From Bugula neritina (lineage: Eukaryota; Animalia; Bryozoa), in assembly GCA_964035545.1 (NCBI GenBank), contig OZ037768.1, positions 12,184,741 through 12,248,740 of the forward strand: a DNA stretch of 64,000 nucleotides, given 5' to 3'. A program made the position numbers and the translations under genes. The notes below the pieces were generated by a model. That model saw only the letters and a list, made by a program, of their open reading frames with translations, was not told where the DNA came from and did no database searches. This document shows, one piece after another, positions 37,101 through 63,338 of the stretch (position 1 is its first letter; the number at the start of each line of letters is the position of its first letter).

Positions 37101-40100
37101 ATACTTGCACTATATTTGTTATTAAATCACGTTTGGGAATGCTGACATATAGCAAGCACGTAAATGGCGCATAGACACACGGGTTTAGCAATGAGTTTAA
37201 GAGTTGAGTAATGGTGGAAATAAGATGTAGATGCTTATAATAATCTTCAAGTATGATATTTCAACCTTGACCCTAGATGTAATCACGATTGAGTAGAATA
37301 GTGGAATGTTACGAGTAGTTGTACATATTATAGTAGTTACTTGAAGTGGAAGTGGATAGTAAGAGAAGTCAATGTATGTTTGCTTGTAGAAACCTGAAGT
37401 GTGAAGCAGTTTCTACACAAACATTCGCTAAATCTACACAAACCATAAAATTCTGTTACTTTCATTCAGGCAGCAGGTCTGATGTTGTTGACCATCTTGA
37501 GTAGTGAGAATACATTTATTCTAAAGTCTGATTGATCAATAGAATTGATTATTGTTTTGGTTTTAGATATATCGGTGAAGAGAAACAGGGAATAGCAGTG
37601 TTTTTTGATAAGACAATTACTCACATAAGTGTTGTTGGCATATGCACTACAAGCGTGGAAGATTCTCATCAGGCTGTAGCTGCCAGACCACAGCAAAAGT
37701 ATCACCAAGTGAAACACAACATTCCCTTCACAGAAAGCAATCAGCAAACTTTGCCTGGGAGTCGCCCTTCCTTTAGGTATGTTTTAAAATGTGTTTGCTA
37801 TAGAATAGTGTACTTACTGGCTATGCCAATTAGTTTTCCACCAGTATGAGCAGTTATTTAGCAAAAGTTTCTTCCCAGAAACAAATTATATAAACTAATT
37901 TTGATACTATCTATATAATCTTTAAAAGTTTTGTTTTAAAACATCCTATGAAAAATTTAAAATTGGCATGCTCAACTTATACCCAAAAAGGCAGGGTTAT
38001 ATGATATTTCTATAATATCATATAAATAATCCTTTGCTAATTATCCCTACTGTAATCTAATCTATTATGGCACTGGATTACTGACATAGCTGGTGCAGTT
38101 TATTTACATCCATTGCCCTGTGACAGATTATTGATAAATAGTTTGTCTCTAGATGAGCACATAGTTTGTCTGTATCCTGTATTGACTACTCTGTAATTGT
38201 AAGCCAGCTGCAGAGTAGCTTGCTCGAGTACAATAATGATTATTAGTTTGTGTATGTAAGAGACGTAGGAATGAATACTTCACCATGAATAAAGGGCTTA
38301 TTAAAAGCTGGTGTTCCATCGGCAAGTTTAGGTCGCAAGAGTTACAACTCACTAGTTAACCTGAGGATGTTAACAGAACCAAAGCTATTGAAATTTCGCA
38401 GCTAATTTATGGTTGCTTATTAAAGACCCACCCCCCCTCCCCTTGTTCATTGATATCCTCAGAAATATACAAATTATAGTTAGGTATGCCTAGTTTCGGT
38501 CTGTTATAAAGGAATTGATATTCTTCATAGCATGTAAATTGTAAAGTGATCTATATACTTTTCAATATTGTGGTTTTGCAAATTGGGTAATGATTGTAAA
38601 TGTTGCTAGAAGCAGCGCCAGCTGGGGGTGAATTTTTGTAGACATCGTATGGATTTCCAATTCCCCAACGCCAAACTCAGACCCCAAATTCGATGACCAC
38701 CAACTCAGTGCTGCTTCCAGCAAAATTCACTAATTACTTTGCCAAGTATAAGCCTAGTTCTCAAGCTTTATATTTTTCTCTTGCTACTATGCTGAGTTAG
38801 CTAATAATGCCAAGGTCTCCAGCCTAGCTGTGTTCTCTCTTGAAGGCTGTAGGAATCCTGGTTATTTATTACATCAAAGAAATACTTAAATGTTGTTTGA
38901 TTGCTCTATCAGCTTTTTATAGGGTTTATAGTACAAAAACAATAAAAAATAGGTTAAAGTTGCTGTGTTAGCTGTCTTAGATTTGCCTAGACTTGCTGCC
39001 AGCTTATCTTCTATGTCATACTTTGACCCGGCAAATATAACCCTTGTATAGTAAGTTTATATCGAATAAAGTTGTTAAGCTTCGGTTTGTCACAGATGCA
39101 CTCTTGAGGGGGAGGGGGCGAAAATACAATTTTTTTTATATTAGATGTGTATCTGTTGGTTTGAAGTGTGGCAAAGTAAAGGCACATTTTGAACACAAAA
39201 AATTTGAAGAAGTGTTAGAGAGGTAGGGACAATAGTGAAAAAATGAAACAAGCCGGTATTTCAGAGTAGAAATATAGCAAAAGAAGTTATATCCCAAACC
39301 AAAATTTATTAAGAAAATTAAAAAACTTGGGCTATCAAGATTTCTCCACTACTGCATCTAAATGGTCGGAGGCACTTTCTAAATCACCAGATTAGAACCT
39401 CTCACTAGAATATGGAACTTCGCTCTGTATAATATCTTCATATTCTTAGCTAGAACTTATAAATAAGATAATCCTTTGGGAATTCAGATTGAGAACATTC
39501 TATGGATTTCCATTAGATGTAGACATATTAACGAAGATTCTAGAAACAGAGCATTTCCTGTTTGTAAAAAATCATCACAATCTTTAATAGCCAAACAGAT
39601 TATTTTTGCAATTGGACAAACAAGTTATTACTTTGTAAGCGTATTGACAAGACCGGCTAATGACAACATTGTTATGGCAACCATGTGGCTTCAAGGCTTG
39701 TTATGTCACGCAACACAGTTGAAGATGACATTGCTAAATTCAAAGCATCACATGACTGTTGGCTACCCTTCACTGCATCTCTAAGTGACGTATATATATA
39801 GTTCTGCCAGCTACTCCAGGCATTCTACATTCACACTGTTGAGAGCAAGCAGCACACTCAGTAAGTGGCTAGTATTTTGAATGTTTATTATAGAGGTTAC
39901 TTTGTAGTCAAACTCTGCTGCACTGAAGGTTGTTGGTAGAATACTGTTAGTAGTAAGGCATAGGTGCTGTGGCAGAAAAGCTCTAAATCAGTAGATGCCT
40001 GATGCAATATCAATATGTGCTTGTAGCCGGCATTTTGCTTTTAGTTTTAGCTTACAATTATATTATTTTTTATGGGTCGCTTAACTCACTTTACTTTATT

Positions 40101-43100
40101 TGGTATTTGAATATCTTGATTTTCATTTATTTTACAATATTCAAGGAAAAGCATCCAGACATAATTGCTCCTTTGCCACATGTGAATAAGTCCTTCTAGG
40201 ATTCTCACAGCGATAGCTACTGTAAAATAAACTAGTTAAAACAGCAGATTTAATCTTCTGCATTTTGCATTGAATACTATAGTATTAGTGAACCATCTTT
40301 AATTATAAAAAAGCTGTGAGAACAGTTGTAACTAAAATTAGCATAAGTGAGTGACTGGCATATTTTTATTTTTAAAAATGCAATCTGTTTTAAATTAATG
40401 TAGGATAGAGCAATTTTTGAGACTGCAAAATATATAATAGTATCTTTATCTGTTGGCTGTTGTATGTGCTTAAATAACACTAAAATTTAGTAAATTTTGT
40501 AGTTGTAAAGATGGCAGAAATGAAGCTCACATATTTTAATGGCCGTGGCAGAGCTGAGTTAACTCGCCTGCTTTTCACCCAAGCTAAAAGGTCCTTTACT
40601 GATTGCCGAGTTGAGGGAGAGGAATGGACCAAATTGAAACCTTGTAAGAACTGTACTGTAATTATAACAAATAATAAGAGCAAAATATAAATGACTGACA
40701 AAGTTGATTTAGTATGCATCTAAAATTATTATGTAACAATTTATTGGTCAGCTCCTGCTAAATTATACCAGTAAATTCTGCTATTCATTTTTTTCAAGTA
40801 TGTAGGTGATATCTATTGCACTCTTATTGGTTAACTTACCATCTGCTGGCTGTCTTACTTTGTACTGGCCAGCAACGTGGATGGCAGGAAAATGGAGAGA
40901 TATGAATGGATAGCTAGGAGTTTTAGCTAGTAGTGCTAACCCCAAACTAGAGCTTACTTTATATTGCTAACCAAGTTGTAGATGTGAGGATTCAAAGCCT
41001 GCTAGTAGCACGTTATTTCAACTTCTTATTTTAAGATCACAATTTGGATAAAAGACTCGTGCATTTTAAAAGTATCTTTATTTTGTAGCAACTCCTAAAG
41101 GCCAGTTACCAATCTTAGAAGTTGATGGAAAAGTCCTGTGTGAAAGCATGGCAATTGCTAGATTTGTTGCTAAGGAACTAGGTATGTGTTGGTGTACACT
41201 TTGGTGAGGCAGCCTCTAGAGTCTAGACAGCAGCTGTTTAGCTTACATAATAGGAATATTGTTGGTTATTTCTCATTATTAGCCTTTCAATGCAGTACTG
41301 CTACCCATTCGCAACTAGTTTCCAACAGCCAACCTTGATAACAAATTAAAGAGGCTAAGAATTTACTTTTAAATAGGTTCAGATGTTGTCTTATCTGTTT
41401 TGATTGGACATCATTATAAACTCAACATGTTTTTAGGTCTTTTTGGTTCAAGCAATCTTGAAGCTGCTGTCTGTGACATGATGATTGAGTCTGTTAATGA
41501 CATACTTCTCATTTGTGTTGATCGCATGTTTAAAGCCAAGACTGAGGAAGAGAAGGTAAAGCTGGTTATGATTATCAGTTAGTACATACTGACATTGACT
41601 GAGCGTGTAGACATTAGTAGCTTTTTATTGAATTTATTATTCTTATAATGTTGTATAATCTTTTTGAGTTGAATTCTACTTAGTTTATTAAATTAATTTT
41701 TTGTGCCAACATTATTTTCCTAACTATAATTTAAGTTGTTCAGCGCAATTTATTTTTCTGTTATTTTATACACTGTTTAGACTTTAGATGAATATAACAC
41801 AGGCACTGAATAATTAATATTCCAGTGTCTATGTTGCAACTTATGATCAGTAATTTTTTTAATTCGTTTGATGGTTTTAGTGCTACATGTTTATTTATAA
41901 GTATCTAGTCGGAATGAAAGTTTTGCAGCAAATTTATTACAAGAGGCACATTAATATATTTATTAAAAAATTCAGGTTTTTGGACATACACTAGCATGAT
42001 TATATTCAAGCTAACTCTGTGAGACTGAGATTTTACCCTGAATATGATAGTTTTATCTTGTGAAAAAGCTTGGTATATCAATATTTCGATATGAAAAGGT
42101 TGGGACTAAATTAGTATGTCTAGTAGTACACCAACTTTATCTGCAAACAATGTGTGCATCAACTCTATCTGCAGATAATGTGTGCATCAATTCTATCTGC
42201 AGATAGGGTGTGCATCAACTCTATCTGCAGATAATGTGTTCTCCAACTCTATCTGCAAACAGGGTGTACATCAACTCTATCTGCAAACAATATGTGCATC
42301 AACTCTATCTGCAGACAGGGTGTACATCAACTCTATCTGCAAACAGGGTGTGCTTTAACTTCAAACTATTTTTGTTTTTGTTGAATATGAATAACTGAGT
42401 TTTTAGCTGTGTTTGTTGCTTCTTACTATGAGATTTATACTACTGAAATAGTAATTTGCATTATTCTGGTGAAAGTTCTGATGGATTTAGTGACTCTTGG
42501 ACTCCTTATCTCAGATAAATCTGTTAACATGACTCCTTAATCTCTACAAAAATTAATAAACGAAACAAAAAAATTATGGTAACTGGTTTGTGATCCATAT
42601 TTCGCAGGAGAAAAACTTGATCTGAATAGGTCCAGATATTTTGATCAAACTGCTTTTTTTTGCCCAATGATTAAATCTGATTGCAGACTTTATGTTTGTA
42701 GGCTGCATGTGATGAAAAACTTGCTAAAGGACTTGAATGTTTTGAAAAATTTGTTGCTGCTGAAAAGAAAGGAAAATTTGTACTCGGTGATCAGGTTTGT
42801 AGTTTGTAATAGTAGTTGCACTGTTATATTTGTGTAGCTTTGAAATATATTCGTGCATAGAATTCATTAAATTGCTAAATTTCTATGCATATAATGTCTG
42901 CCTAATTTTTTTATAAATTTTGTTTCTTATTTTGTTTTCTTATAAACATGGTTATATACATTTCTTTTGGAACTATTTTTTGTTTAGTGCAAAGCTTACT
43001 GTAGTTATTGCTGTGGTGAAATGTTGGGTTTGTAGGTGTGACTAAACTTCTCAGAGAGCTCTTGCCTAGAAACAAAAGTGATGGTCTTAATGTGATTTTA

Positions 43101-46100
43101 TTCATTGATCTGTACAAAACAGAGCTTATTTTTTACAAAAACCTTTCAAAAAACTGTTTTATATAGGTAAAAATCAATTAGCAGTTTTAGAACCTTTTGT
43201 GAGCAAAAAATGACTTGCCAGTTTACTAATATGCAAAGGCCATGAATATAAATGTAGGCCTATATACACTGCATCACAGTGGCTATACTGAGTAATCTCA
43301 ATACTACAAGCTTGTTCAAGCTAATCATTGTTAACTGTAGTATTCACCTTTATTCTTACATATTCTGTTCGTAGGTTTCCATTGCTGATGTAGCAATATT
43401 TGTTGGCGAAGAATTTGTGTCCAAGTCTCTGCCTCATTTTAAATTGGACTACCCTGCAATAAATTCAGTATCCAAAGAGTTTTCATCGCAGTCCCATATT
43501 GATGAGTACTTGAAGGCAAGGCCAGAGTCTTTGTTTTAAATAAATGATTTTGCCCTAGTCTTTCTAACTTGCATATTTTCAGAGATACTACTAATTGTAC
43601 TTGTAGTAAGTCAGTTATGTTCAGTTTGTTTAAAATTTGAATACCAACTATTGCATTGCTGTTTTTTGAAGTTATTTTACTTGGATTAACAATAAAAATA
43701 TAGATATGATCAAAGAGGTTTGTTGATTATTTTGACTTCATTTGCACTAATTTGTACATTTCCATTAATTATACGGATGCGAGTAGCCCTCCATTCATCT
43801 CAATTAATAACTTGTTGGGTGTATAGAAATAGTTGAGCATTATTAAAGGTTTAGATTCTGAGGGAGTTTACAATCATTTAAATTCGACACGGCCAAGCTA
43901 CTTCAGGGAGCCCTCAGTCCCTATCTTAATGGAGCTCACTAACTTTTTGATGTTAATGGATTCGAGCAGCTTTTCTATATGAAGGCCTCCTCATCTGGCT
44001 ATAGATATAGTCATACCTTTCCTTTTAAGGCAACGTTTCCTGTGACTGCCTAATCCAGAATGATGCTGGAGTATCCTCTCCAAGTTATCCCTTGAATAAA
44101 AATTCCTTGGGTGGGTGTATGTAGGTACGCCATAAATAATAGAATAGCTTATCAGCTCTTTTTGATATTTTGAATGTTTGTCAATAAAAGGTCGTAGTAA
44201 ATATGGGGTTAGTAACTGATAGGATATAAAGCACATTTAATATGTCTAGTGCTACTCAAAATTATCAATTATCTTCAACATAATGTAGACCAACTTGCAA
44301 ACAATATTTTTAATAACCTCGTTGCCGAATAAAAATTTTTACTGTGCTTCAAATGCTGTGTACAATAAGGAATGACGGCATCCTTTATGTTACTCACAGT
44401 ATGAACCAAAAACCTGCAGCAGCTCCTCAATTTGTAAAGCTTCTACTAGGTAAGTATTATGATTAGCCTATATAATCTATTAGCATTTCAGATGAAATAT
44501 TTAAATGCCCTAGGGCCTAGAGTATAAAGATTTAATTGATAAGTTTAATTTTTACATACCATTTAGCAATGTAAAGTTTAAAATTTCAATAGGAACATAT
44601 CTCTGGTTCAGTGTTTTTGCAGGCGTATTTTTAAACATTTTCAACAAATGTCATTCACTTGTGGCTACATGTTTTATCAATTTTTTTGTACTTTACAGTT
44701 TTCCAGCATGACTAATTATAAAGTGATATACTTCAATGGCCGAGGGAGAGCTAAAATCATTTGTCTTACTCTAACTCAAGCAAGTTTTCCGATACTCACC
44801 TACCGGGTGAAGAATAGACCGAAGTAAAACCTTGTAGGTTTTTTAAATATAATAATATATTACAGTGCCTCACGGTGCATTCAGGTCTTTATAATTGAGA
44901 ATATTTCCTTTCATATTTTCAATTAGAATTAACTGAGTCAATAAAAACAACAATTTGAATTTAGTTTTATCTAGAAAGACGTATTTGGCTTGTAAGTTGG
45001 CAGTAAAAAGCTCTGACAATGGCTCTTGTTCAATAAATACTTGCACTATATTTGTTATTAAATCACGTTTGGGAATGCTGACATATAGCAAGCACGTAAA
45101 TGGCGCATAGACACACAGGTTTAGCAATAAGTTTAAGAGTTGAGTAATGGTGGAAATAAGATGTAGATGCTTATAATTATCTTCAAGTATGATATTTCAA
45201 CATTGACCCTAGAATTTAGATGTAATCACGATTGAGTTAGATAGTTGAAAGTGACTGATTGTACATATAATAGTTACTTGAGTGTGTCTGTTAACAACCG
45301 GTTCACTCTGTGATGTTGTATTTCCTGTGCTTATCTGTTGCCATTGAAGTATATTACTAACTACTGAATGTTTTGCTGGCACCCCCTGAACATGCAATGT
45401 GGTTGTTTGAGGATAAACTTCTGTGATTGGAATAATTCATTCAGATTATCAGATCAGTAACACTTAGTATGCTGGTTGTTACTACTATCAATGCTATTAC
45501 ACACTTGACTGGCTGCAGCTGTAGATGATTAACACTCAGAGGCAGCTAGGGTATAGTAAGAGAAGTTAATGCACCTTGGCCTTGCAGAACCCTAGAGTTT
45601 CTATACAAACATTTTTCTTTTCAAAAGGGTTTGTGTAGTTTTTCCTAAACATTGCAGGATATTCATTTTAGTATATTGTATCCATATCCTCTTTAAATCA
45701 GAGTGAAAACTGAAATTTAATAAATTGTAAAAGCTGCATAAATTTGCCATTCCCTAAGCAGAAGTTAGGTGCTACTTGCTATATCCACTAGCATGTTTTC
45801 TTTCAGCTTTACTCAGGCAACTTGTTTTTATGTCATTGGCCATTTTGACCAATAAGAATGCAGTTCTTCTCAAGTGGGGCAGCCTCTACTTAGTGTGTTT
45901 ATTGAAAAGAATTGAATATTATTTTCTTTCTAGAAATATTTGTAAGAAAAGAAGAAATAGCAGTGTTTTTTGATAAGACAATTACTCACATAAGTGTTGT
46001 TGGCATATGCACTACAAGCGTGGAAGATTCTCATCAGGCTGTAGCTGCCAGACCACAGCAAAAGTATCACCAAATGAAACACAATATTCCCTTCACAAAT

Positions 46101-49100: not shown

Positions 49101-52100
49101 TCTGAGCTCTCATAGGTTTTTTAAGTAATATTGTTGGAAGTTGTTTTTGATTTACATGGGAAGAAACATTTAAATTCTAAAACATTCAAAACTATTTTGA
49201 ATGCTTGCTAAAAATTTGTATTAGGTCAAAAAAACCCAGTGCAAATTCTATGCTAATTCAAAAGTTTTCTGTGCATTCTATAGCTTTCATCTAATTGATT
49301 TTGATAAAACTAATTTGCTTTTATGGGCATGACACATAAATAGAGTATAAGGTATAAATTCATTTGTAGGTCTCTATGGGAAAACCAACTTAGAAGCTAC
49401 AACTTGCGATATGGTACTGGAAAGTGTAACCGAAATTATCAATGCATGTGTTACTCGAAAATTTAGAGCTAAAACAGAAGAAGAAATTGTATGTATTAGT
49501 TTATTTCATTCTGTTGTTTAAGTTTTTTAACAGCAAATTTAGACTGAGTTTATTGATTTTTCTATACATTTTTTATAGATCCCAATTATTTTGTGTTTTC
49601 AAAATTAAGGTGGAAAATTGGCGATAAAACTATCTTATTTTCTACTTTTTTACATTAGTCATACAGTTATTCATACTAATGTAGTGTGTATTGCACAGTG
49701 CCACAATATTGTTACCCATCTTTATAAATGCATTGTAGGCTGCAGCTGATGAAAAGATTAATCTTGCTCTTCAGCGTTGTGAGACGTTTTTAGCTCGTAT
49801 AAAACAAGGAAAATATGTGCTTGGCGACCAGGTTTGTATAAGTATTTTATTTTTTTCATATTTGTATCATCATTAAAATGATGTTGCTATGTTTGAAGCT
49901 ACATCTGTGAAAGTCTTGTTAGTTTTCAGGAGCAAGTTACAGTATATAATTGACGCATATATAGTGTTCATGTTGGATATTTTATGTTTTAGGCTTCGAT
50001 TGCTGACATTGCTATATTTGATGTCTGTGATATGGCGAGATGGTCAATGAAATTTATAAATATGGATGCATATACTGTTATGAATGAGATTTCGAACACC
50101 TTTTCTAGCCAGGAGCATATTAAAGCATATGTTTCAGCTCGGCCAGAAACTACTTTTTAAAATTTAATCAACTTCAACCTTATTATCTTGGCTTTTATGC
50201 TCTTTTTGAACACACTTTGTAGAGCATGCTGGAACATAGTAAAGTATCATCTGTGGAGTCATTGCACAATTTCTATTCCTTCCTCTATTTGTGATATAGT
50301 GGTTTACTTACCACATCACTTAATTTAGGTTATCACATTTTTTTTTCAATTTTTTACCAACTATTTAGTTTTATATACTAAAGTCAATAAACAAAATATT
50401 AACAGCTGCATTTCTCACTGATAAAACTCTTCACAGTACATTGAAACGTTTATTTTTCCTAAAAAGTCCACTTTTGAACTGCTTCGCTAGCGTTCATGAA
50501 TAATCACCCATACTATCAGTAGACAAAAAGCATTAATTGCTGCAACATGCATCTTTTGTTAACTAAAACTGCAATTGAAAGAGAGTGGCTTGAAAATGAG
50601 CATTGTAATGCCACATTGTGTGCTCTCTTTCAAAGATTATAATTGCTACTTTTGTGACCTACACTCGTTTATAATAGTCCAATACCAATGAGAAACAAGC
50701 GTAATGCTGGCAATCGACTTTCACTCGGCCCCTGTCCCCTTGCTTCTAAATATGATAATTATAGTGTTTTTCTTGGCATTGCTCTAATATGATTTTAACC
50801 ATAGACCTAGAGTTAGTGAATTGAGGTAGTTAACAGGGTAAATTTGAGCAAGCTGGTCACGAAGCCATGCCTGCTCTAATTGATTACTTTCTTGACTTGG
50901 TCAAGTTTAATTGCAGTCAGTTCAGTCAAAAGTTATCTTCACTATACTTTTTCTGTGCATTATTTTGCTTTGCATTCTTTTGCCCATCCCCCCCTAGACA
51001 CACTTTGCCATATCGTAGGCTGTGATGTAAAATGGCAGCCATTTTAATGTGTCCGGCTGAAGTTCTCAAAGTCCGCTATTGGGTACGATCTATGATAACT
51101 CAATGGACATTAATATCCAATGAGTTGCTTCGAACATCTTCCTGTCCAATAGGAGCTCAATGCAACTTTTTTTATTCAAGCAGTGCTCGGACATTTGTAA
51201 AAATGGCTGACATTTTACGTTGTGGCCTACGGTGCGGCAAAGTGTGTCTAGGGGGATAAAGTTCTCCTCTTGCTTAGCTGTGTTATATTGGTTATGTGTT
51301 ATCTAAGATGTCATTCTATTATTTGTCAAAAGCAAGTTTTCACATTTCTAGATGCATTTGTATGCAATAATTATTCAAATCAGTGTTAATTATGTAAAAT
51401 TTTATGATGTATGATGCATATAAGTTTATTATTTTGTTAATGTAAGTGAAGCCCACACTAAAAATGGACTTCTATATGCTTTAGTTGCTTATATTTGTTT
51501 AATGTCCATAGAAAGCTGTTACATTTCATTCAGTTTAAATGCTAAAATTGTTTACCACCCAAGTTAGCCCAACATTGTGAGTAAGTGTGCATTCTTAGTC
51601 AAACTGATTTTTCTTTAATAAAATGTTAGTGTAGAATTAACAATTATGTAATAAGTAATACATGATTATTAATAGTTGATGATAAAACTAAGTGCAACTA
51701 ATGTGACTACAGTCTGAAAAACTACTCTCTCTTTACCTAAACCTCAAACAGATAACAATGATCAACATGCTACAGTAACAAAGTTTGGCTAAGTCAACAG
51801 AGTCATGGTACTCATATGACTCTGTTGTGTCCAACTCAATGATATTTTTCGTCTTAAAATTGGCTTTGCATTGAATCCTAGTAGTTTAGTTTCTAGTAGA
51901 GAAACTATTGTTTCAGAAGTTTTCTGTACTTGAACAGCTCAGCTGTTCTGCTAAAACCTTTTATCTAAAACCTTAGTCACAAAATCAGCTTTATAAGAAA
52001 AAATATACACCAAGTGGTAGATGATTATAGTGTTGAGATTTGTGCTCATAAAGCTGCTGAAAAGGCCTATAATGTAGAAGCACCAACAAGCGCTACTATA

Positions 52101-55100
52101 AAATATGTACTATATTATGTACTAGTTTATTAATATCTAGGGTTACTGACATTGAGCTAACATTGTATTATAATACATGTAATATAGTTTGCAGTGTAAG
52201 GCAGTTAACATACTGGGTGTCAATTCACTAATTCTCAAATAACATAAGATTAAGGGAAAATCAGTTTATGGTTAGCCCACATGGGACTGCATACAATCTG
52301 AGAGATGTAAAGTTGACATTAATAATGTCCAACCTGTGCTATTAACAGATGTATTGAGAGTATTTGATGGTATTATGGTAACGCTAGTATTTTGTTATTG
52401 ATAATTGATTTAGTGCAATTAGCTAAAAGTACCTTATTTCACCAATATAATATTATTGTATGTTGCAGCAATATGTGTGGTTTCTCACTTGGACGCTTCC
52501 CACTTCCCAGTTCAAGGCTATATTTTTGGTACAATATATATAGTACTTAATATACCTATACATGCCTATATAGCTGTTGTATTGATTGCTAAACATGATC
52601 GAAATAATAATTAATATAAATTATCTGAAATAATATTCCAATTTGTGCGAGACAAAAAAACAGTAATACATTATCTTTAATGAATGTTTATAGTTTTTTA
52701 TAAAATATTTTTTAAGCAACAAGCAGTATAGAAAATGCAAAATTAATAAGTTAATACAGATCAAAGGAATTTATATATGTGCAATTGATCCAAATTTATT
52801 TAAATATTATACATATATTTCAATGATATTCAAATAAATTGCACATAAAATAAGTATATTCATATTGTATCAAAATAAATAAATAGCACCCATGTGGGAA
52901 GCTTCTAAGTGGGAATTTAGCCTAGCGTCTAACTGGGAAGCGTCTAATGGGATGACACCAAATGTGTTGGTTGTTATTTTGAAAATTTCGATAAAGGAAA
53001 TAAGAGTAATTCAAATCATTTCATTGACATGCAGTAATAGCATAAGCCATAATGGCATTAGCCATTTGGTTTTTTTTAATTTTATTTACTGCAGTATCAT
53101 TATCCTTTGCCTTGAGCCTGAATTTTTTTTGTAGAAATATTATTGTAACTTTTGTAAATCATTTTTGCGTATGTGGTTTCATACTGTGGTAGAATTAAAC
53201 GAGGTGAGGTGGTGCCCACATCCCACCTGCTTAGCCAAGGTTCAATAGGAAAGATAAATATAAGTAATATTAGTAGGATGGCATCCTACAGGTTCTATAA
53301 CACTTTCTACGCTTTGAAGTCTTGACTTACATAAGTCTATAAAATTGATATTTCATAATACTGACACATTATGATGTCTAAGAAGCGAATTTATATTGTT
53401 TAGCTGTGTGCTGAATAAATAGCATCAGGCTGTATAACTTTTATATCTAGTTCTTGTATTTCATTACCTGTTAAGATAATGTTTTGTTCTTCACTACTTG
53501 CAATAACAGTATTTCTATAATATTGTCAATAATCAATACCCACAATGCCTTTCTCTACGCCTGGCTGCTCGCGACAACCAGCAAATACCTACGCAGCTGC
53601 AAGTAATAACATTAGTACTGTGTTACAACGCTCAACAACCAGCGCTATCTTCGGCATATCGCTAGCAAAGGTAAGGCCGCTAATGTCTGTTATCTTCTAT
53701 GTCTACGTTTGCTTCTACACAGTACAGCACCTATCGTGTGTATTGAAATATTACAAGTTCGCTAAATGATCTGTTATGTAGTGCATTTTATAACCTGTAT
53801 TATATTTTAATTGCATTTTTTTAGAACTTAGTATGTCTGAGATTAAGCTAACTTATTTCAACACGAGAGGCAGGGCTGAGGTCACTCGACTGATATTCAC
53901 TCAGGCTCAGAGGAAGTTCATTGATAATCGTATTGATAGAGAAGAATGGGCAAAGATGAAGGATTGTAAGTATAGAACAGTTTTAGCTCAAATGTATGAT
54001 GTTTCTTTTGATATTTTTTGCAAGTCACATGTGTATTCATGCTATTTCATTCATGCAGAAAAAGTTTAATTATTGTATTGTTTACACTTTGTGCTGTTCC
54101 ATTTCTGCACGTCATTGTCCTATATTGTGCCGCGCCTGACTTCAGTAGTTCCATTCAATAGTCTTGCTAGTAAAACAGACCAAGTTCTGTAATTTATCTC
54201 ATAGCTGTGTGAGAAAATAGGCTGCTAACACGAAATTATCTATAAGCAGCTTCAATGTGGAGGTGATTGAGTGCAGTAGTTTAAGGTTTTGAACTTAGAG
54301 TTGGGGGTTTAAAGTTTCAACCTAAACCACCAACTCCAAACTCAAGAACCCAAAAATGCTGCACTCAGTCACCCCCAGGTCGGAGCTGCTTATAACTTTT
54401 TCTCAAGCTATATACGCCCTGATGTTACTGCTATGCTTTTAAAAAAAATTTTTTTTGTAGATTTTTTCAAACCTTTTGTTTATTTCATAAAAAATTCCTT
54501 TATGTTTCCTTATGTTTTGTTGGCTAGCAATTGGTCAAGTTATTTTACATTGCATGACGAAACATTTCACAACATGGATAATATATTAGTAATCTGTATG
54601 AAATTGTTGCATACATTATTTGCTAGTATTGCAATGTCTATTTATCACATAATTTTTTGTAAAACTGAGCGGTTCTGTTGCATCATTTTATATTACAACA
54701 TAGTTCTCCATAAATGTCTCAAACATTTAGCTTGAATTATACACACAGTGAAGGCTGCAGTGCTACATTTTGGTAATTATTTAAATTTTGAACTTGAAGA
54801 AAAAATTGCTTTCAGTGAGATGACGCACGACTGTGATGATCTACTAAAAATCGTGCTGTGTAGCTGTTTAAGAGCAATGTCAATAGTCTTGTTTTTATTG
54901 TGACATCCATCTAGAATGTCTGGTAAAGAGATTTATTTTAGACTAATTTAGCAGTACAGATAGCAATTGTCACGTTCTCTACTATTTTCTACACACTTTT
55001 ACCAGTTTCATGAATTTACTTGACTCTTACGTACTTTCATAGCAATTTACTGCCTAGAGTTTTCTCCACTTGACTTTGCAGCTCCTTTTACAGCTACAAT

Positions 55101-58100
55101 ACATTGCATTCTACAAATAAAGTGTTTCTGTAACACCACGTCCAACAAATTCAAATATTGTAATCACTACCTAATATTTTATTTGCTAGCATTACAATGC
55201 ATATTATCACATTGTAGTAGAATATGTATATAATATGTAAATGTTATTCACGCATGCAATCATATATATTTTTTATTTTACCTGTATGTTTAGGAATTTA
55301 GGTAACTCTATAATAAATATTGTCAATATGAATTTTAGCTACTCCGAAGGGACAACTCCCAGTGCTAGAAGTTGATGGTATGATGATATGTGAGAGTGCT
55401 GCCATAGCTAGATTCGCTGCCAGAGAGACAGGTAATTATATTCACACATGTATTCTACCTGCTTGTGTTTCTCTATTCAGCACATGCTATTGAAAACCTT
55501 TCTGTGTTTGTTTAGGACTGTATGGCAGCAACAATATGGAGGCAGCAATATGTGATATGGTTACCGACAGCATTGGTGAAGTGGCGCATGCTGCTCTCAA
55601 TAAGATGTTTTCAGCTAAGACAGAAGATGAAAAAGTATGTTTTTGTGCCTAATCAGACTTTGTTATATTGCTATATGATGTTTTAATAAAAGGCCAGTTT
55701 ATGTTGTTTTTTACTTTTTATGAACCAATAAACCAAGACAGTATTTGTAAGCTAGTATTTCAACAAGGAAATTTGACATGGCTAAACTTTTTTTGGCTTC
55801 CACTTCTTTTCAATTATTTTTCAACTTTTGTAGCATTCAGCCTTTTATTGTCACAAAATTTAAAGCCTGGGTGCCTAAAACATTGTTCAAAGCTAACAAT
55901 TTGAGGTTTTTAAACGAATCTTCAACTGATGCTTTCTTAAGGTTAAAATGGTTTTGCGCCAACTTCTGTCATTTTCTTCAACTAGCTCTAAAGTCATCAG
56001 CTGCAGCTGTATCAACACTAGTACCTTCTTCTTGTCTCCAAACTTCTTATGAGCTTTTTTTAAGTTTTTATGCCTTTTTGTTATAAGAATGCTGCGGATG
56101 AGAAGATTTATGAAAGTCTGAAACCACTGGAAAAGCTGGTAGCTCAGTACAAGAAGGGAACTTATGTCCTCGGTGACAAGGTTAGTATCTGCTCTGAGAG
56201 TTACTGGAGATATTTATGTAGTAGCCTACTCTATAAATGGACTCATTATAATATATATGATCTAACACTATGCTTATTGTTGATAGCAGTTTGCTAGTTT
56301 TTGGCAACTGCAAAATGGCACATTTTAGTAGTAACTCATTACATCACATGTTGCAATGTCGAAAAGTTGGATCATGCTAGCTGTGCTGTGCTGTTGCATA
56401 TTATTACTCTACTTGGTTTAAGATTTTTTTAGTTTAAACATAAGGTGCCACTAAAATAGCTTCGCAGCCATTACACTACATACCTCTTCTACGTTTTTGA
56501 CCGCTCTATGCTATGCCTTGTAGGTTGCTGCACCAGACATTTCACTCTATTCGGTTGTGGCATTCTGCACAGATGCTAACCCTGAGTTTAAGACGGACTC
56601 GATTCCTACTATAGCTGGAATTGCTAAGAGCTTCTCTGAACAGCCTCATATTGCCGCCTACTTGGCCAGCAGACCAAAGACTGAGCACTAATACTCTTGT
56701 TATACTTGTACCAATATAAAATACTAAATATAGAGTGATACTTATTATGACTTATTTTCTCTATGAACAGTTCTCCTAGTACAATAGAAGAGTGTAGTAC
56801 CGATCATATTTTTGTTCATCAATAAATAATAATTTCATGTAACACCAAGACTTATTCAAATCCAACTATAATAGGTAGAACCTAGTTAGTGCTTAGACAA
56901 ATACAATAGCCATATGTCAGCCTAACTTCTTAAATTTGGTTTGTGCCTTCAGTCAGAAATTCAATTTGGCCGAGTTGAAAATTTAATCGAGTTGCATTTG
57001 ATTTTCGATACTTTAATCGGCTAATTTCAGAATAACAATCAAAGGGAATGATAACTCATTGTATATCGTTATTCCTGTTTATGGTTATATTGGCTGCCTT
57101 TCTCAGTTATCGCTTTTATGCTGTCAACTCAGCTAATTCATTACATTTTCAAAGGGCGTCAAATAGCAAGTCATATCTTAATATTCAAAAGTGAGCTTCC
57201 ACATCGATATGATTTCAACGACTTTCAATAAAACTATAAAGGGGTAATCGGACGAGTGATTTTAACTGAAACTTTTTTTAGAAAAGTATAAACGCACTAT
57301 AATAACTGTGGCTGAAATATTATGCTCACAGTTGTGAAATATGTCTGCTGGTTGACAGTTCAAACTTTAGAGGTTTCCTCAAGTCCATTGCTATAAAAGG
57401 ATAAGGGAGTCGGGAATGACCTGAGCTCCTTTCAGCTAATATGCAGTCGGTGGGGCGAGGGGGGTGGGAGGTTAGATTTTATATATTTGTAACATATGTA
57501 TTTGAACCCTTTCAGTCACTGCCGTCTTACTTTTTATGGTTGCTGCAACAGTTTCTATATGGTTTACTGTGAATATTTTATTTTGTAAGAATGGAATAAT
57601 TAAATTAATTTATTGTGTTATTTCTAGATATTTAGGCAGATATTTATGCTGTGCAACATTGGTTGCGGTAGTTATGGTTTGTTCAATAAGTTATTGGGCA
57701 GGTTTTTCTAGAACAGAAAACGCTGTTTGGGAATGTGTTATGAAAGTTTTCAGTTGTCTGTCAATTTATAACATTGTTTGTACTTATCCATTAAATTTGC
57801 AGCCAGTTAGAAACTGCTCATACAATTTCCATGGTTTGATATGAAAGATTTAGATTTAGTCCATCTTAAGTGTTGCAGAGGCTTATTAAAAGCCATACTT
57901 TTATATTCTTAATTTCATATATCTTGACTTTTTCTTATATATTAGTCTGGAAACATTATGTTATTAGGTTGTTGTCTACTTTCTATGTTTTAGTGACTTT
58001 TAGTTGCAATGACAATCGTGCATATTAGTCATGGTTAGTCATTTGCATTGCTCGTTCTATTTGAGTTACACTATTGCTAGACCAAATTGGGTCATAAATA

Positions 58101-60749
58101 ATTAATCTTTTATACTTTTAGAAGGAATCGTCTGCCCAAGAGTCTGCCATATTTTGATGTTCCCAGTCAGCTGAGAAGCTGCATTCTGACAGATACTAAA
58201 GCCTTGAGTAGAAATTATCCGCTCCTAGAACAAGTAAGAGGGGCAAATTGTTTCTTATTTCAATATTTCTTATATCATAGTTTCTTACTTCAAATTTTAA
58301 GGTAACATAATTAAATATTATCTGAAATAATCAATGGTATGCTGGATATTGTAGCTAGAAGTTATATTTTAGTAGAGCGATCCATTAGTTTTATGATAGT
58401 AAATTAGGGTGGGCTGTAGGTTTAAATTTGTTTTATAAACCAGCTGCAACTTCTCATTATTTTACTTACTATGAAGTTTAGATGGTTTATTCTGATGATC
58501 ACTTTAGTTAAATCACATTCTAAACTTTTTTCCATAGTGTAGAATCAGAATGAGTTTTGATCATCATCACCATCATCATTCTATAAATTCAGAAAAATGT
58601 AGCCTATTGTGAATTTTATTTTGTATATTTTAATTTTGATTTAGCCTTTATCACAACAAAACTACACATCAAAGTTTTCTCTTCTGCTACATATTGAAGA
58701 AGTTAGGGCAGAAATAGAAATCCGAAAGTTTGATATTCCAGCTGTAGGTATTTTATTTTATTGGTAGTCAATAAATTGTATTTTGTAATAGTTAGTGGTT
58801 TCATGCAAACAAAAAATATTGACACCACTAAGGATTTTTGGAAGACACTTTAGCAGTAGAGTTACATTTTCAGTTTTTCAAAGCAGTTCTGCTTTTGATA
58901 AACCACAAAATTTCACAAACATTGGATGAGTTCAAACTCAGCCCTTTGTAAATAAAACCGTTTGATTTTTGTTCACTTTGTTTTTCATAATCACTCATGT
59001 GAATTTTTAGCATTTGGGCGTTCTGCATAAGTTGAGTACACTAGGATGTTTAAAAAAGAAGGTTTTTTTTCTCTGGCTATCACACAGTCATACAAAGAGA
59101 AAGGAAGAGGCTAAAAAAGCTGTAGTAATAAATAAATTATACTATTCCGAGCTTTTTATTAGATTAGCTTACTAAGATATAATTACAGCCACTTATCAGT
59201 GTTCCTTGACTGAAATTATTGCTAATAAAAATATGATTTCATTTTAATGACCATGAGTTGTGTTGCTATTACACTAATGTCATCAGATGTCAAATTTCCT
59301 GTACAGATTGATGCTGCAGTGTCCCACTGTTAAACTCTTTATCTTATTGAATACATCTTTGTTTGGTAAACCTATCTGGTGAGATCTTCCATACAGTTCA
59401 CCTTTTCAAAGCGTATTTTAAGGATATAATGTTAATACTAAGGTTATTAGGGTAGACTTTTTTAGTCAAAGCACAAGATTAGAAGATATAGAATATAGCA
59501 AAACAATATGAGTAAGGTAGCAATTTATTTTATTTCGTTGTATAATTTAAACAATCATCATTAATAGTCTTTTGAAAAAGTAACTCGACAGATTGTGAGT
59601 AGGAATTGTATGAAATCATTTAAAAAAATTCATTGTTGATAAATTTTTACTTAACATGAGTAACAGTAAGAATGCCTCCCCTTTTTGTTGTGTGCATCAA
59701 GTTGAAATTTGTAGCCCCTTTATTCTTTTTTGTCCATAAAAAATACAACTGCTTTAGGAAAGAGATTTACATGTTTCAAGGATGTTATTGTATTTTACTA
59801 ACTTTGTTGAATGTAAAAGCGTGGCTGGTGCAGTATTGCTGTACTGTAGTCACCATGTGTCTGTAGGCAGTGTTTGGTAGAAGTAAGGGTTATCTAACTC
59901 TAGAGGTACTTGGACTTCCTGATGGACAGCCAAACCTCATGGTTGGGGATAAACTCTCTGTTAGCATCAACAGTCACATGCAGCCAATAAAGTACGAGGG
60001 ATATATATATGAGGTATGCAAGCTGCTGTGATATTGCAGTAACCAGCTCTCCATTTCTAAAAATGTTCTTTCCATTAGAGTAGTTGTCTTCTCTTATTTA
60101 AAGATTTAATATGTTGGTCCAAAGTGCAAACAACTACAGTATGTAGACATGGTATTTGGTTTTAATGTGAATATTATAACATTATTTCAGATTATCTGTG
60201 ATAAGGTATACGCCAAGTTCCATTCATCATTCCATGATAGCTATAGTGAAGAGGAATGTTATGTAATATTTTACATTAGCAGGTAATAAATATATTTTGA
60301 GCAAGTGATTACAATGGAGTAGGTGACATTTTCATGTATTCCAACATAATGAGAGGAAAACTCTTGAAAGCTTCTGATTTTTTAAGACAGTATTGATGGT
60401 GTTAATACATTGTAGAACTGACGAAAATGTTTTTGTCAAAGTGGTATGTGTGCGTGCGTGTGTATATAAGTAATATCCCACGGGGTTGCCTCTTAAAACT
60501 AACATTCGAATGTAGAATAAATGATCTCTTTTTGTTATTTAAATTAATTGTTATCATAATGACATCCTTTTTAGATCTACTTTAGCCTCCCCGCATGTTA
60601 TAAATTGGTACGTTATGGCTTTACTGTTGATGGAGTTTAACGGATGTTCTTGGAATTTTCGTGTTCTAGAATGTGCATTTTATTCTTCAGAGTTCCGTTT
60701 AGACGAATGCATATGGCTGCTAAGATGATCACTCAAATGGAATGGCCAG
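25115..60749 (+). CDS. MOV10L1: RNA helicase MOV10L1 / Armitage ortholog (piRNA biogenesis), 5' part only (13 exons, ~621 aa); helicase core beyond the window
   Basis: Exons: 25115-25295, 32183-32319, 32984-33181, 34139-34244, 34815-35055, 35467-35559, 36224-36412, 37567-37776, 58122-58233, 58645-58743, 59867-60013, 60191-60282, 60691-60749. All GT-AG with phases in register. Peptides match MOV10L1 as I recall it: MFRIARVIINF; GRITHLYQDYGLIDGYIYFSKD; YVPMKGDLVTGTMIECDQ..WKHRAL (OB-fold repeats); LPKSLPYFDVPSQLRSCI; NYTSKFSLLLHIEE; LTLEVLGLPDGQPNLMVGDKL; YEGYIYE; RVPFRRMH. Confidence 0.9.
25320..25842. repeat. AT-rich degenerate (TAN)n low-complexity tract, resuming at 27238 to ~27800
   Basis: Periodicity of the type aatactaatactaatagtaatact/ttatacttatagt on both sides of the RTE insertion. 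Confidence 0.6.
25856..27224 (-). mobile_element. 5'-truncated RTE-clade LINE (RT domain and C-terminus) with a 13-bp TSD
   Basis: RT motifs GVRQGCLLSPTLFN, LRFADDID, FKYLGS, FLYACESWTL, LKWYGHVTR, GRRRGRQKKRW. The 3' tail is a short (ACAGGT)n. TSD atttgttactata at 25843-25855 and 27225-27237. There is an in-frame TGA after FADDID and a frameshift near 26930. Confidence 0.95.
28362..28795. mobile_element. MITE with ~35-bp imperfect TIRs
   Basis: aatagacccttttcagaagtcccc...cccc versus gggg...ggggacctctgaaaatggtctatt. Confidence 0.75.
29143..31700. mobile_element. ~2.6-kb non-autonomous DNA transposon with ~90-bp imperfect TIRs
   Basis: cacagttagtttaaggtca...gctttatgtt...gatagctcgaacag versus ctgttcgagctatc...aacataaagc...tgaccttaaactaactgtg. 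No transposase ORF inside. Confidence 0.7.
34281..34630. repeat. ~22-bp minisatellite (MOV10L1 intron 4)
   Basis: Unit ttgtgtatataggtatataaac with shorter variants. Confidence 0.95.
35564..35977. repeat. 11/17-bp compound minisatellite (MOV10L1 intron 6)
   Basis: cacatactagt and cacatacacatactagt units, starting directly at the GTGAGT donor. Confidence 0.95.
39725..39860 (+). promoter_or_regulatory. GST-1 promoter and non-coding exon 1: ARE-like motif, TGACGT, TATA, donor at 39861
   Basis: ATGACATTGCtaaatt (RTGACnnnGC plus AT tail) at 39725, tgacg+tatatatata at 39786-39800, Inr-like gcattc at ~39820, and ca|gtaagt donor. Matching acceptor at 40502. Confidence 0.6.
40511..43539 (+). CDS. Glutathione S-transferase, sigma class (GST-1), 200 aa, nested in MOV10L1 intron 8
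   Basis: Exons: 40511-40643, 41089-41181, 41437-41555, 42702-42794, 43375-43539. Motifs KLTYFNGRGRAE, EEWTKLKP, TPKGQLPILEVDG, GDQVSIADV, YLKARP. AATAAA at 43691. Confidence 0.93.
42130..42352. repeat. 28-bp minisatellite (~8 copies) in GST-1 intron 3
   Basis: catcaactctatctgca(g/a)a(t/c)a(at/gg)gtgt(g/a). Confidence 0.93.
44370..44920 (+). pseudogene. Truncated GST-2-like pseudogene (5' UTR exon and first coding exon 44708-44833 only)
   Basis: MTNYKVIYFNGRGRAKIICLTLTQA, then a 5-bp deletion and TGG>TAG relative to 48538-48670. Homology ends mid-intron at ~44920. Confidence 0.9.
45934..46141 (+). pseudogene. Inactivated duplicate of MOV10L1 exon 8
   Basis: The core is identical to ~37591-37710. 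The copy is 208 vs 210 nt, has a nonsense TAG at ~46107, and its donor is mutated GT>AT at 46142. Confidence 0.9.
46295..46369. repeat. Perfect 36-bp inverted repeat with a 3-nt loop
   Basis: aacttaaaattggaaagctcattttggatcgatctc-agc-gagatcgatccaaaatgagctttccaattttaagtt. Confidence 0.97.
46376..47100. mobile_element. Non-autonomous DNA element with GATCGATCT/CATGGAAA subterminal motifs; left end rearranged
   Basis: The motifs cluster at both ends, and the right end reads ctcagattgatccatggaaagccc. The element is absent from the paralogous copy at ~37975. Confidence 0.65.
47242..47304 (+). pseudogene. Remnant of a GST-1 paralog last exon, with 3' UTR homology continuing to ~47520
   Basis: KFVSQQHIEE*LKARPKIAF* versus GST-1 EFSSQSHIDEYLKARPESLF*. 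Downstream DNA aligns with 43540 onward, including AATAAA at 47450. Confidence 0.85.
48538..50160 (+). CDS. Glutathione S-transferase, sigma class (GST-2), 201 aa, nested in MOV10L1 intron 8
   Basis: Exons: 48538-48670, 48763-48855, 49370-49488, 49739-49831, 49993-50160. Motifs YKVIYFNGRGRAE, TPKGQLPVLEIDG, GDQASIADI, YVSARPETTF. UTR-exon donor at 48259, AATAAA at 50386. Confidence 0.93.
50986..51257. mobile_element. MITE with ~65-bp imperfect TIRs
   Basis: ccccctagacacactttgcc...gtaggc...gtaaaatggcagccatttt versus aaaatggctgacattttac...gcctac...ggcaaagtgtgtctaggggg. Confidence 0.85.
52478..52960. mobile_element. Probable MITE with an AT-rich interior
   Basis: cacttggacgcttcccac on the left versus gtgggaagcttctaagtgg and ctgggaagcgtctaatggg on the right. 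Confidence 0.6.
53833..56691 (+). CDS. Glutathione S-transferase, sigma class (GST-3), 201 aa, nested in MOV10L1 intron 8
   Basis: Exons: 53833-53965, 55339-55431, 55516-55634, 56088-56180, 56524-56691. Motifs KLTYFNTRGRAE, TPKGQLPVLEVDG, YVLGDK, YLASRPKTEH. Exon sizes (133/93/119/93/168) equal those of GST-2. UTR-exon donor at 53671, AATAAA at 56821. Confidence 0.93.
54241..54393. mobile_element. Short hairpin MITE in GST-3 intron 1
   Basis: tataagcagcttc...ggtgattgagtgcag versus ctgcactcagtcacc...ggagctgcttata. Confidence 0.7.
56955..57297. mobile_element. Diverged, left-truncated copy of the 14328-14776 MITE
   Basis: Shared blocks: ttcaatttggccg.gttgaaa, ttatcgcttttatgct, atatgatttcaacga, actataaagggta, gtataaacgca. 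Confidence 0.8.
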
Positions 60750-62830: not shown

Positions 62831-62900
62831 ACCCGACATCTACAGCTTAGCTGCTACATTCTATAGATCTGTTCACTGGTTACTTGTTCACTCATCAACT

Positions 62901-63338
62901 ATGGGAAAACTCTTGCTAGTCATAGGCATCTGTCAGATTGCCGTTGGAGTGGTTGTTGTTGGTTTGGTTGGTAAAAGCTACTATGATACGACACAGGCCT
63001 TTGGATCTTCCAAAATTGAGCAGATTAATGCGTTTGGACCAGTATTAATTGGACTGCTAGTTGTAATGAATGGAGTTTTTGGAGTGTTCACAGTATGCTG
63101 CTCAAGTAACAAGAAGATAGATGTGATCTACTTGATGGGTGCAGCAGTAGCTGCTGCTGCCGCTGCTGCCATGGTGTGGATCTACGCACTACGTGTCTAT
63201 GAATGCAGAAATATTTGCCTGTACAACCAGAAAACTCAAGACATTCACGCCACTCTACTTGCCTTCAGTTTGGGGTGCTGTGCTATGAGTGTGTTCGGGA
63301 TGATTGCCTCTTCTCTTGCTATCTGCCGGAAACTATGA
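62901..63338 (+). CDS. Intronless 145-aa four-transmembrane protein, MS4A/CD20-like
   Basis: Four hydrophobic helices. GPVLIGLLVVMNGVFGV resembles MS4A TM2, and there is a Cys pair (CRNIC) in the TM3-TM4 loop. Good start context (actATGG) and a canonical promoter. Confidence 0.8.
   Translation: MGKLLLVIGICQIAVGVVVVGLVGKSYYDTTQAFGSSKIEQINAFGPVLIGLLVVMNGVFGVFTVCCSSNKKIDVIYLMGAAVAAAAAAAMVWIYALRVYECRNICLYNQKTQDIHATLLAFSLGCCAMSVFGMIASSLAICRKL

Follow-up and report, generated by a model that had tools for sequence, protein, structure and literature searches.

A sense-strand cluster of sigma-class glutathione S-transferase genes in a predicted intron of a MOV10L1-like helicase gene of Bugula neritina

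Several genes can reside together in one intron, as in Drosophila dunce and in human NF1, which contains OMG, EVI2A and EVI2B. A genome-wide survey of mammals found that pairs of host and nested genes cover more than one tenth of the genes, with a slight bias towards the opposite orientation (PMC11694760). In mouse, H13 and Mcts2 are a pair nested in the sense orientation, for which interference has been demonstrated (PMC13309782). Here, we describe a window, by which we mean the whole stretch of 64,000 nucleotides that was analysed, from the bryozoan Bugula neritina (G000:C4:12184741-12248740, in an assembly of 216 Mb with about 33% GC). In this window, three sigma-class glutathione S-transferase (GST) genes lie between exons 8 and 9 of a predicted MOV10L1/Armitage-like helicase gene, hereafter referred to as the host. 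It is likely, in our judgement, that a sigma GST gene colonised a conserved intron of the host in the sense orientation and multiplied there by local duplication, and that the resulting genes are nested in one MOV10L1 gene. An earlier note on this DNA, written from the letters of the sequence, had presented such a layout as uncommon and nesting as more often antisense; this was overstated, the bias in the mammalian survey being only slight (PMC11694760). Nested genes, including those on the same strand as their host, are common, and the GST-in-MOV10L1 arrangement is real but ordinary. Furthermore, because the GST copies arose in place by tandem duplication, the orientation that they have in common is to be counted once, as an event with roughly even odds.

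The helicase gene and its eighth intron

All family and class searches were made exon by exon, while joined exons were used for frame checks and for the ratio of nonsynonymous to synonymous substitution rates (dN/dS). For the host, a profile hidden Markov model (HMM) made of 8 Mov10l1-like proteins was run over every plus-strand open frame in the window and in a further 20 kb, the host DNA past the end of the window being that of loci L003 and L004. The same profile was run on three orthologous loci, of Lytechinus, Limulus and amphioxus, for their exon borders. The host features of the window are:

32206-32325, 32975-33184, 34139-34237, 34805-34999 and 35471-35560 (+): host N-terminal exons with S1-like repeats; profile positions 52-308, E 3e-14 to 0.018, collinear in tblastn
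36213-36412 (+): host exon 7, with two spare bases AG at its end; HMM match 36219-36410, positions 307-369
37567-37776 (+): host exon 8, 210 nt, phase 2 at both ends; HMM match 37571-37771, positions 372-438
37777-58121 (+): predicted host intron 8, 20,345 nt, with the GST array, relics of a duplication and short dispersed repeats
58122-58233 (+): host exon 9, start of the MOV10 core; HMM match 58126-58248, positions 443-483, E 0.0027
about 58645-58743, 59867-60013 and 60191-60282 (+): host exons 10-12, with the Mov-10 helical and beta-barrel domains, from Pfam, HMM and splice sites

The host is the predicted orthologue of MOV10L1/Armitage, a helicase of the piRNA pathway. The gene extends over at least 45 kb, from about 32.2 kb in the window to about 13.5 kb beyond its end, and the profile matches run in order from position 52 to position 1135 over the window and the DNA downstream. 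N-terminal S1-like repeats distinguish MOV10L1 from MOV10. On single host exons, the Pfam S1-like matches are weak (15.8 and 14.2 bits), and a genome-wide Pfam S1-like search missed even the window's own split repeats and was too insensitive; the Mov10l1 profile matched the S1-like exons with E of 4.5e-9, 1.2e-6 and 3e-14, in the correct order, and the host thus has the S1-like repeats. The domains that follow are the Mov-10 helical domain (PF21635, 27.9 bits on 58651-58752) and the MOV-10 beta-barrel (PF21634, 32 bits on 59867-60028). The helicase core is found 0.6-13.5 kb past the end of the window, where the HMM positions 687-1135 are covered with no gap. The open exons of L003 and L004 carry the helicase motifs GPPG/TGKT, DE/AGQ and QGQE, and the AAA_12 exons are located at C4:12260165-12261969, 11.4-13.2 kb past the end of the window; the Upf1-like superfamily 1 (SF1) core, composed of AAA_11 and AAA_12, is present. 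When a helicase exon was compared with 1.84 billion representative sequences, the best full-length matches were named 'RNA helicase Mov10l1-like' (from a crinoid, Limulus, two sea urchins and amphioxus), and unnamed proteins of a jellyfish and a centipede were also among the best matches. In tblastn, several Mov10l1-like proteins align collinearly on both sides of the GST array.

The two sides of the array fit together at the level of the reading frame. Exon 8 ends in ...CCTTCCTTTAG, followed by the donor GTATGT, and leaves two spare bases, while the acceptor of exon 9, ...CTTTTAG, is found immediately before 58122. Exon 9 contributes one base, and the join, AG+A, encodes Arg and keeps the frame. 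The reading frame of exon 9 has no start codon of its own. Exon 7 likewise leaves two spare bases, and the phases of exons 7, 8 and 9 agree. The splice from 37776 to 58122 is a predicted junction. All GST exons fall between these two positions, on the plus strand, and at the level of the DNA they are nested in one intron.

The position of this intron is shared with other animals. In Lytechinus, an exon covering profile positions 370-439 meets one covering 438-479 across an intron of about 0.3 kb; in Limulus, the exons cover 370-450 and 441-477 and the intron is about 4.5 kb. The profile span of exon 7 also has a matching exon in both species, and several other exon borders are common to the echinoderm and chelicerate orthologues and the bryozoan host. 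In the window, the exon that follows exon 9 covers profile positions 478-511. Because the same exon border is found in the Lytechinus and Limulus orthologues, the position of host intron 8 is old and conserved, and the predicted intron has swollen to 20,345 nt in B. neritina. The earlier note had joined exon 8 to exon 9 in frame across 20.3 kb and had treated the two halves as parts of one gene and not of different paralogs; the fitting phases, the Arg codon and the acceptor at 58122 agree with the first claim, and the abutting profile positions, together with the border shared by Lytechinus and Limulus, agree with the second. Within the Mov10l1-like loci of Lytechinus and Limulus, none of the gene calls is nested. 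In amphioxus (Branchiostoma belcheri, L005 14259-19798 and 30840-36806), the Mov10l1-like gene has two antisense TPR-repeat genes in the next intron, which is 23.8 kb long. Unlike in B. neritina, the counterpart of host intron 8 contains no GST in the orthologues examined, which come from three other phyla, and the GST nesting is therefore lineage-specific.

Separately from the host, six more MOV-10 beta-barrel matches and AAA_12 exons, on both strands, are found at G000:C4:6020889-6160908; several contain stops, which may be due to introns. This cluster, at C4:6.02-6.16 Mb, resembles an expansion of MOV10-like genes in one place, some 6 Mb away from the window.

The GST genes and the duplication that made them neighbours of a dead exon

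When GST-like open frames were compared with the window by tblastn, three intact genes emerged between host exons 8 and 9:

40511-43539 (+): GST-A, exons 40511-40643, 41089-41181, 41437-41555, 42702-42794 and 43375-43539; 200 aa; AATAAA at 43691
48538-50160 (+): GST-B, exons 48538-48670, 48763-48855, 49370-49488, 49739-49831 and 49993-50160; 201 aa; AATAAA at 50386
53833-56691 (+): GST-C, exons 53833-53965, 55339-55431, 55516-55634, 56088-56180 and 56524-56691; 201 aa; AATAAA at 56821

The exon lengths are 133, 93, 119, 93 and 165-168 in all three genes, all 12 introns are GT-AG, and none of the models has an internal stop. Pfam GST_N matches exon 2 of GST-A and of GST-C with 32.1 and 29 bits, respectively (cut-off 20.9), and GST_C_3 matches exon 5 of GST-C with 25.4 bits (cut-off 21.6) and that of GST-A with 17 bits, which is below the cut-off; in these single-exon matches, the GST_N domain precedes the GST_C domain. 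The N-terminus of each protein reads K-(L/V)-(T/I)-Y-F-N-x-R-G-R-A-E, in which the Tyr is residue 8. In sigma-class GSTs, the N-terminal Tyr of this motif is catalytic. Among structures of the PDB, the best matches to exon 1 of GST-B were the Schistosoma 28-kDa GST, Onchocerca GST1, a sigma-type GST, HPGDS, S-crystallin and Drosophila GST2 (E 4e-10 to 1e-6), while pi and alpha class structures reached E of only about 0.003-0.009. As judged on exon 1 of GST-B, the one exon compared in this way, the trio appears closer to sigma members than to those of the alpha, mu and pi classes. The reading of the array as three complete sigma GSTs with 5 coding exons each on the plus strand, each followed by an AATAAA, thus stood up to the GT-AG models, the lack of internal stops, Pfam and the PDB ranking.

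The first AATAAA lies 152, 226 and 130 nt after the stop codon of GST-A, GST-B and GST-C, respectively. On the plus strand of the intron, there are 47 AATAAA or ATTAAA hexamers in 20.3 kb, the same density as in the whole window. Because the intronic density is that of the background, the AATAAA after a GST stop carries no weight alone. It had been proposed that a full-length host mRNA must skip about 18 exons and at least 4 poly(A) signals; the array does hold 15 GST coding exons, over which such an mRNA would have to be spliced, but hexamers as dense as the background take the force out of the second count. A pyrimidine tract and an AG are found 1-8 nt upstream of each GST ATG, and likewise upstream of a dead copy of the first exon. 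They fit a putative non-coding leader that is spliced onto the coding sequence. Of the 5' UTR exon that the earlier note gave to each GST, this tract with its AG is what the sequence shows.

The pairwise protein identity of GST-A, GST-B and GST-C is 50-59%. In a local computation on joined exons, the dN/dS of the pairs is 0.14-0.33, with the synonymous divergence (dS) saturated. By these values, the three genes are old duplicates retained by purifying selection. Sigma-like first exons number at least 15 across the genome. Outside the intron, the closest relative, a fourth member of the subfamily, is located at C4:7562442-7562570 (-), 4.7 Mb away on the same chromosome, and its first exon is 65% identical to that of GST-A. 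Further clusters of sigma-like GSTs are found at C1:9.76-9.78 Mb and C3:24.37-24.38 Mb.

Between GST-A and GST-B, the intron contains relics and a repeat that had been overlooked earlier (a GST exon-1 relic, a pseudo-exon, a GST 3' relic and a high-copy repeat):

44708-44838 (+): GST-B-like first-exon relic, with a frameshift and an in-frame stop (tblastn), and a piece of GST-B-like intron 1 to about 44923
45934-46141 (+): pseudo-exon 8', a dead copy of host exon 8, with a 2-bp deletion near the acceptor, TAG at 46107-46109 and the donor changed from GT to AT
46344-47084 (strand not assigned): high-copy dispersed repeat of about 740 bp; word depth in the DNA run about 50,000, compared with about 125 on either side
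47242-47506 (+): GST-A-like last-exon relic and 3' flank, its stub at 47242-47301 with an in-frame stop (tblastn, blastn)

The relics belong to two units, which align in the following blocks:

37018-37344 (unit 1) and 44954-45281 (unit 2): 91% identity; copy of host intron 7, which marks the start of unit 2
37525-37974 (unit 1) and 45892-46315 (unit 2): 77% identity
43495-43747 (unit 1) and 47260-47506 (unit 2): 75% identity
43962-44919 (unit 1) and 47808-48751 (unit 2): 70% identity

Unit 1 ends in the dead GST-B-like exon 1 and a short piece of intron 1. Unit 2 is composed of intron 7 sequence, pseudo-exon 8', the 3' stub of GST-A, and the upstream region of GST-B with GST-B itself. The stretch 36950-38000 has only two copies in the 216-Mb genome, which rules out a dispersed repeat as the source of the blocks shared by 37.0-38.0 and 44.9-46.3 kb. 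Exon 8 and pseudo-exon 8' are 90.5% identical and have a perfect core of 118 bp (37591-37708 and 45956-46073), while the adjoining intron is about 60% identical. With its 2-bp deletion after the acceptor, pseudo-exon 8' does not continue the frame of exon 7. Use as an alternative or mutually exclusive exon is ruled out: the copy is out of frame, contains a TAG and has no GT donor, and the loss of the donor is shared with the sibling species described below. Together, the relics are the trace of a tandem duplication in which exon 8 was copied along with GSTs. In the simplest course of events, the ancestral order would have been exon 8, GST-A, GST-B. A tandem duplication, with its ends in host intron 7 and in intron 1 of GST-B, would then have taken in exon 8 and GST-A, after which the second GST-A would have been mostly lost and the redundant pieces would have decayed.

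The duplication could be compared with that of a related animal. Contigs of two JGI metagenomes, whose names are labelled AY690838, have 87-92% identity to the genome of the window in introns and exons alike, and we infer from the contig label that they come from a sibling species. A protein look-up with the frame of exon 8 gave one match, the 74-aa gene call P0158 on the 1228-bp contig L011 of such a sample. L011 is 91.8% identical over 631 bp to the dead copy at 45693-46320, and 77.8% identical to 37539-38058. It has the flank indels of the dead copy and its change of the donor from GT to AT, as well as a 1-bp deletion of its own that breaks the frame. By these shared changes, L011 is the orthologue of pseudo-exon 8' and not of exon 8. 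Because the donor change and the indels are shared, the duplication, and hence the adjoining of GSTs to exon 8, is older than the split of the two species, the sibling side being represented by one 1.2-kb contig. In the 118-bp core, the two copies of the window are identical to each other and differ from L011 at six sites, a mark of gene conversion after the species split. This indicates an ongoing conversion between the live exon 8 and the pseudo-exon 8 kb away. Past position 631, L011 continues with sequence like 38162-38483, which unit 2 of the window has lost where the high-copy repeat now sits. Neither of two metagenome scans, with the last exon of GST-C and with the frame of exon 9, confirmed a relative, and protein look-ups with the frames of exon 9 and of the duplication junction had no match; the contigs there are 1-3 kb long and such blanks say little. 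As to synteny, which the earlier note had named as a check, the duplication is seen in the sibling contig L011, and the orthologous loci of three other phyla are without nested GST.

The repeat at 46344-47084 may be a polymorphic insertion. In one contig of the DNA run X1, only five other letters separate 46343 from 47084, and this contig may represent an allele without the repeat. The short unitigs of X1 cover all of 43400-48900, with an even word depth of about 115-130 that is approximately double where the copies of the duplication cross-map. Outside the repeat, the X1 unitigs have no conflicting joints, in pieces that are too short to prove long-range structure. The other spacer of intron 8 has short dispersed repeats only.

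Several further features lie in the window or close to it. A dispersed repeat of about 290 bp is found at 57014-57300, between GST-C and exon 9, and again at 14538-14772; its copies, at 75-82% identity, number in the dozens, and contig C8 carries a great many of them. Another, of about 480 bp, is found at 52483-52963, with over 40 copies that are 70-77% identical; one of its ends has short opposite-strand matches, which point to terminal inverted repeats, as in a miniature inverted-repeat transposable element (MITE). An Rfam scan of the window found no RNA family. The remaining features are:

4275-9424 (+): neighbouring gene upstream, one exon of which is of the class-3 lipase type; Lipase_3 35.3 bits on 8699-8902, with the motif GHSLGG
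17585-18343 of the window: short-unit tandem array with 30-bp units; similar short-unit arrays are found in downstream host introns, at L003 6747-7818 and 2439-2816
25825-27149 (-): fragment of a reverse-transcriptase retroelement, in a GC-richer patch (0.378); RVT_1 36.3 bits on 26643-26918 (-)
62832-63335 (+): open frame of 168 aa 3' of host exon 12, which has several hydrophobic segments and matched nothing in Pfam; it could belong to an unrelated gene, nested or neighbouring, or have arisen by chance

One gene or two, and the question of interference

We propose that the old intron that separates the last exon of the variable N-terminal part from the exon with which the MOV10 core begins was colonised by one GST gene in the sense orientation, and that local tandem duplication gave rise to three long-lived GST genes under purifying selection. 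Each GST would have a promoter of its own, and splicing would join a short non-coding leader to the AG that directly precedes the ATG. From the pre-mRNA of the host, the entire 20.3 kb would be removed as one intron. The helicase would be expressed mostly in the germline and the GSTs mostly in the soma, with collisions being rare; separate tissues would be the simplest way for both to work. Fusion proteins of host and GST are ruled out by a local frame check: whichever GST exon follows exon 8, the frame is lost and a stop is met within 3-37 codons. A stray splice of this kind would give no fusion protein and would probably be a target of decay.

Some of what we found weighs against this reading. 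The first exon and the start codon of the host were not located. A search of public sequencing runs for the stretch found one DNA-like run and no RNA run. Individually, the profile matches of exons 7 and 8 are non-significant (E 6.7 and 0.8), and they count, in our reading, only through their exact collinear slot between significant neighbours and the matching exon borders. The own promoters and 5' leader exons of the GSTs are assumed. The functional exon 8 of the sibling and both intron borders were not retrieved, the sibling arrangement being deduced from L011.

The second and third of these sources of doubt would also suit an arrangement of two genes. Exons 1-8 would then form a gene of S1-like repeats only, ending soon after 37776, a helicase without the N-terminal region would start past GST-C, and the GSTs would be intergenic. 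The exon 8-exon 9 junction is a predicted one, exons 7 and 8 match the Mov10l1 profile weakly, and the six further MOV10-like copies at C4:6.02-6.16 Mb point to a family in flux. We nevertheless consider two genes unlikely: the frame of exon 9 lacks a start codon, and the acceptor at which it begins fits the phase of exon 8, no profile positions are missing between exons 8 and 9, the same exon border lies within single genes of sea urchin and Limulus, and homologous proteins have both halves in one chain.

A different proposal accepts the nesting and gives it a function; the earlier note had put it forward beside two others, tissue-exclusive expression and poly(A) suppression in the germline. 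Transcription of the GSTs, for example under oxidant or xenobiotic stress, would hinder the elongation of MOV10L1 or cause its premature polyadenylation, and the piRNA capacity would be lowered. The sense-nested geometry, with complete terminal exons and AATAAA, resembles that of mouse H13/Mcts2 (PMC13309782), and the arrangement, being older than the species split, is at least tolerated. Persistence, however, is equally expected of a neutral arrangement with separate tissues of expression; the hexamers are no denser than the background; the orthologues of three other phyla have no nested GSTs, which means that the nesting has not been conserved with the helicase; and the regulatory link between GST and MOV10L1 remains speculation. 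We regard this proposal as quite improbable. Still less credit is due to its most specific form, in which, as with Mcts2 and H13, induction of the GSTs in germ cells would make the pre-mRNA of MOV10L1 terminate early or be mis-spliced, stress would lower the piRNA capacity, and the dead copy of exon 8 might act as a decoy acceptor.

An assembly artefact, in which the GST cluster was misjoined into the helicase gene or the duplicated region was mis-collapsed or mis-expanded, is hardly credible: an intron that holds a diverged tandem duplication together with a repeat of very high copy number can mislead assemblers, but the duplicated blocks are only 60-91% identical and easily told apart, the independent-looking DNA run covers 43400-48900 evenly with no foreign joints outside the repeat, and the sibling contig L011 reproduces 45.7-46.3 kb.

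With the GSTs nested in one MOV10L1 gene, as we propose, the locus would be a clean, datable case of a gene family that settled and expanded in an intron of an essential germline gene and dragged a host exon along. Were it true that GST activity limits the helicase, the stress response would be tied to transposon defence. There are also consequences for annotation. Gene finders may split the helicase in two, and they may call the dead exon copy, which is an open frame in the sibling and is called there as gene P0158.

Comparison with known helicases, GSTs and nested genes

The host resembles MOV10L1 of vertebrates and Armitage of Drosophila in having the S1-like repeats, the Mov-10 helical domain, the beta-barrel and a complete Upf1-like core, all in the same order. 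In comparison with those proteins, the germline and piRNA role of the bryozoan host is assumed. The nested GSTs share with the sigma GST/HPGDS family the Tyr-8 motif, the Pfam domains GST_N and GST_C_3, a length of about 200 aa and the ranking of sigma structures first for exon 1. They differ from it in being a diverged trio, with 50-59% mutual identity, whose class is known from single exons and whose activity is predicted from sequence. As nested genes, they are similar to H13/Mcts2 (PMC13309782) and to the pairs of the mammalian survey (PMC11694760) in that whole coding genes lie in one long intron towards the 5' half of the host, and the same questions of interference and intronic polyadenylation arise. 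In contrast to these pairs, the bryozoan array is known here from its DNA and not from imprinting, methylation or expression. Moreover, the GST array is composed of three tandem multi-exon paralogues and not of a single retrogene, and one of its duplications also copied an exon of the host.

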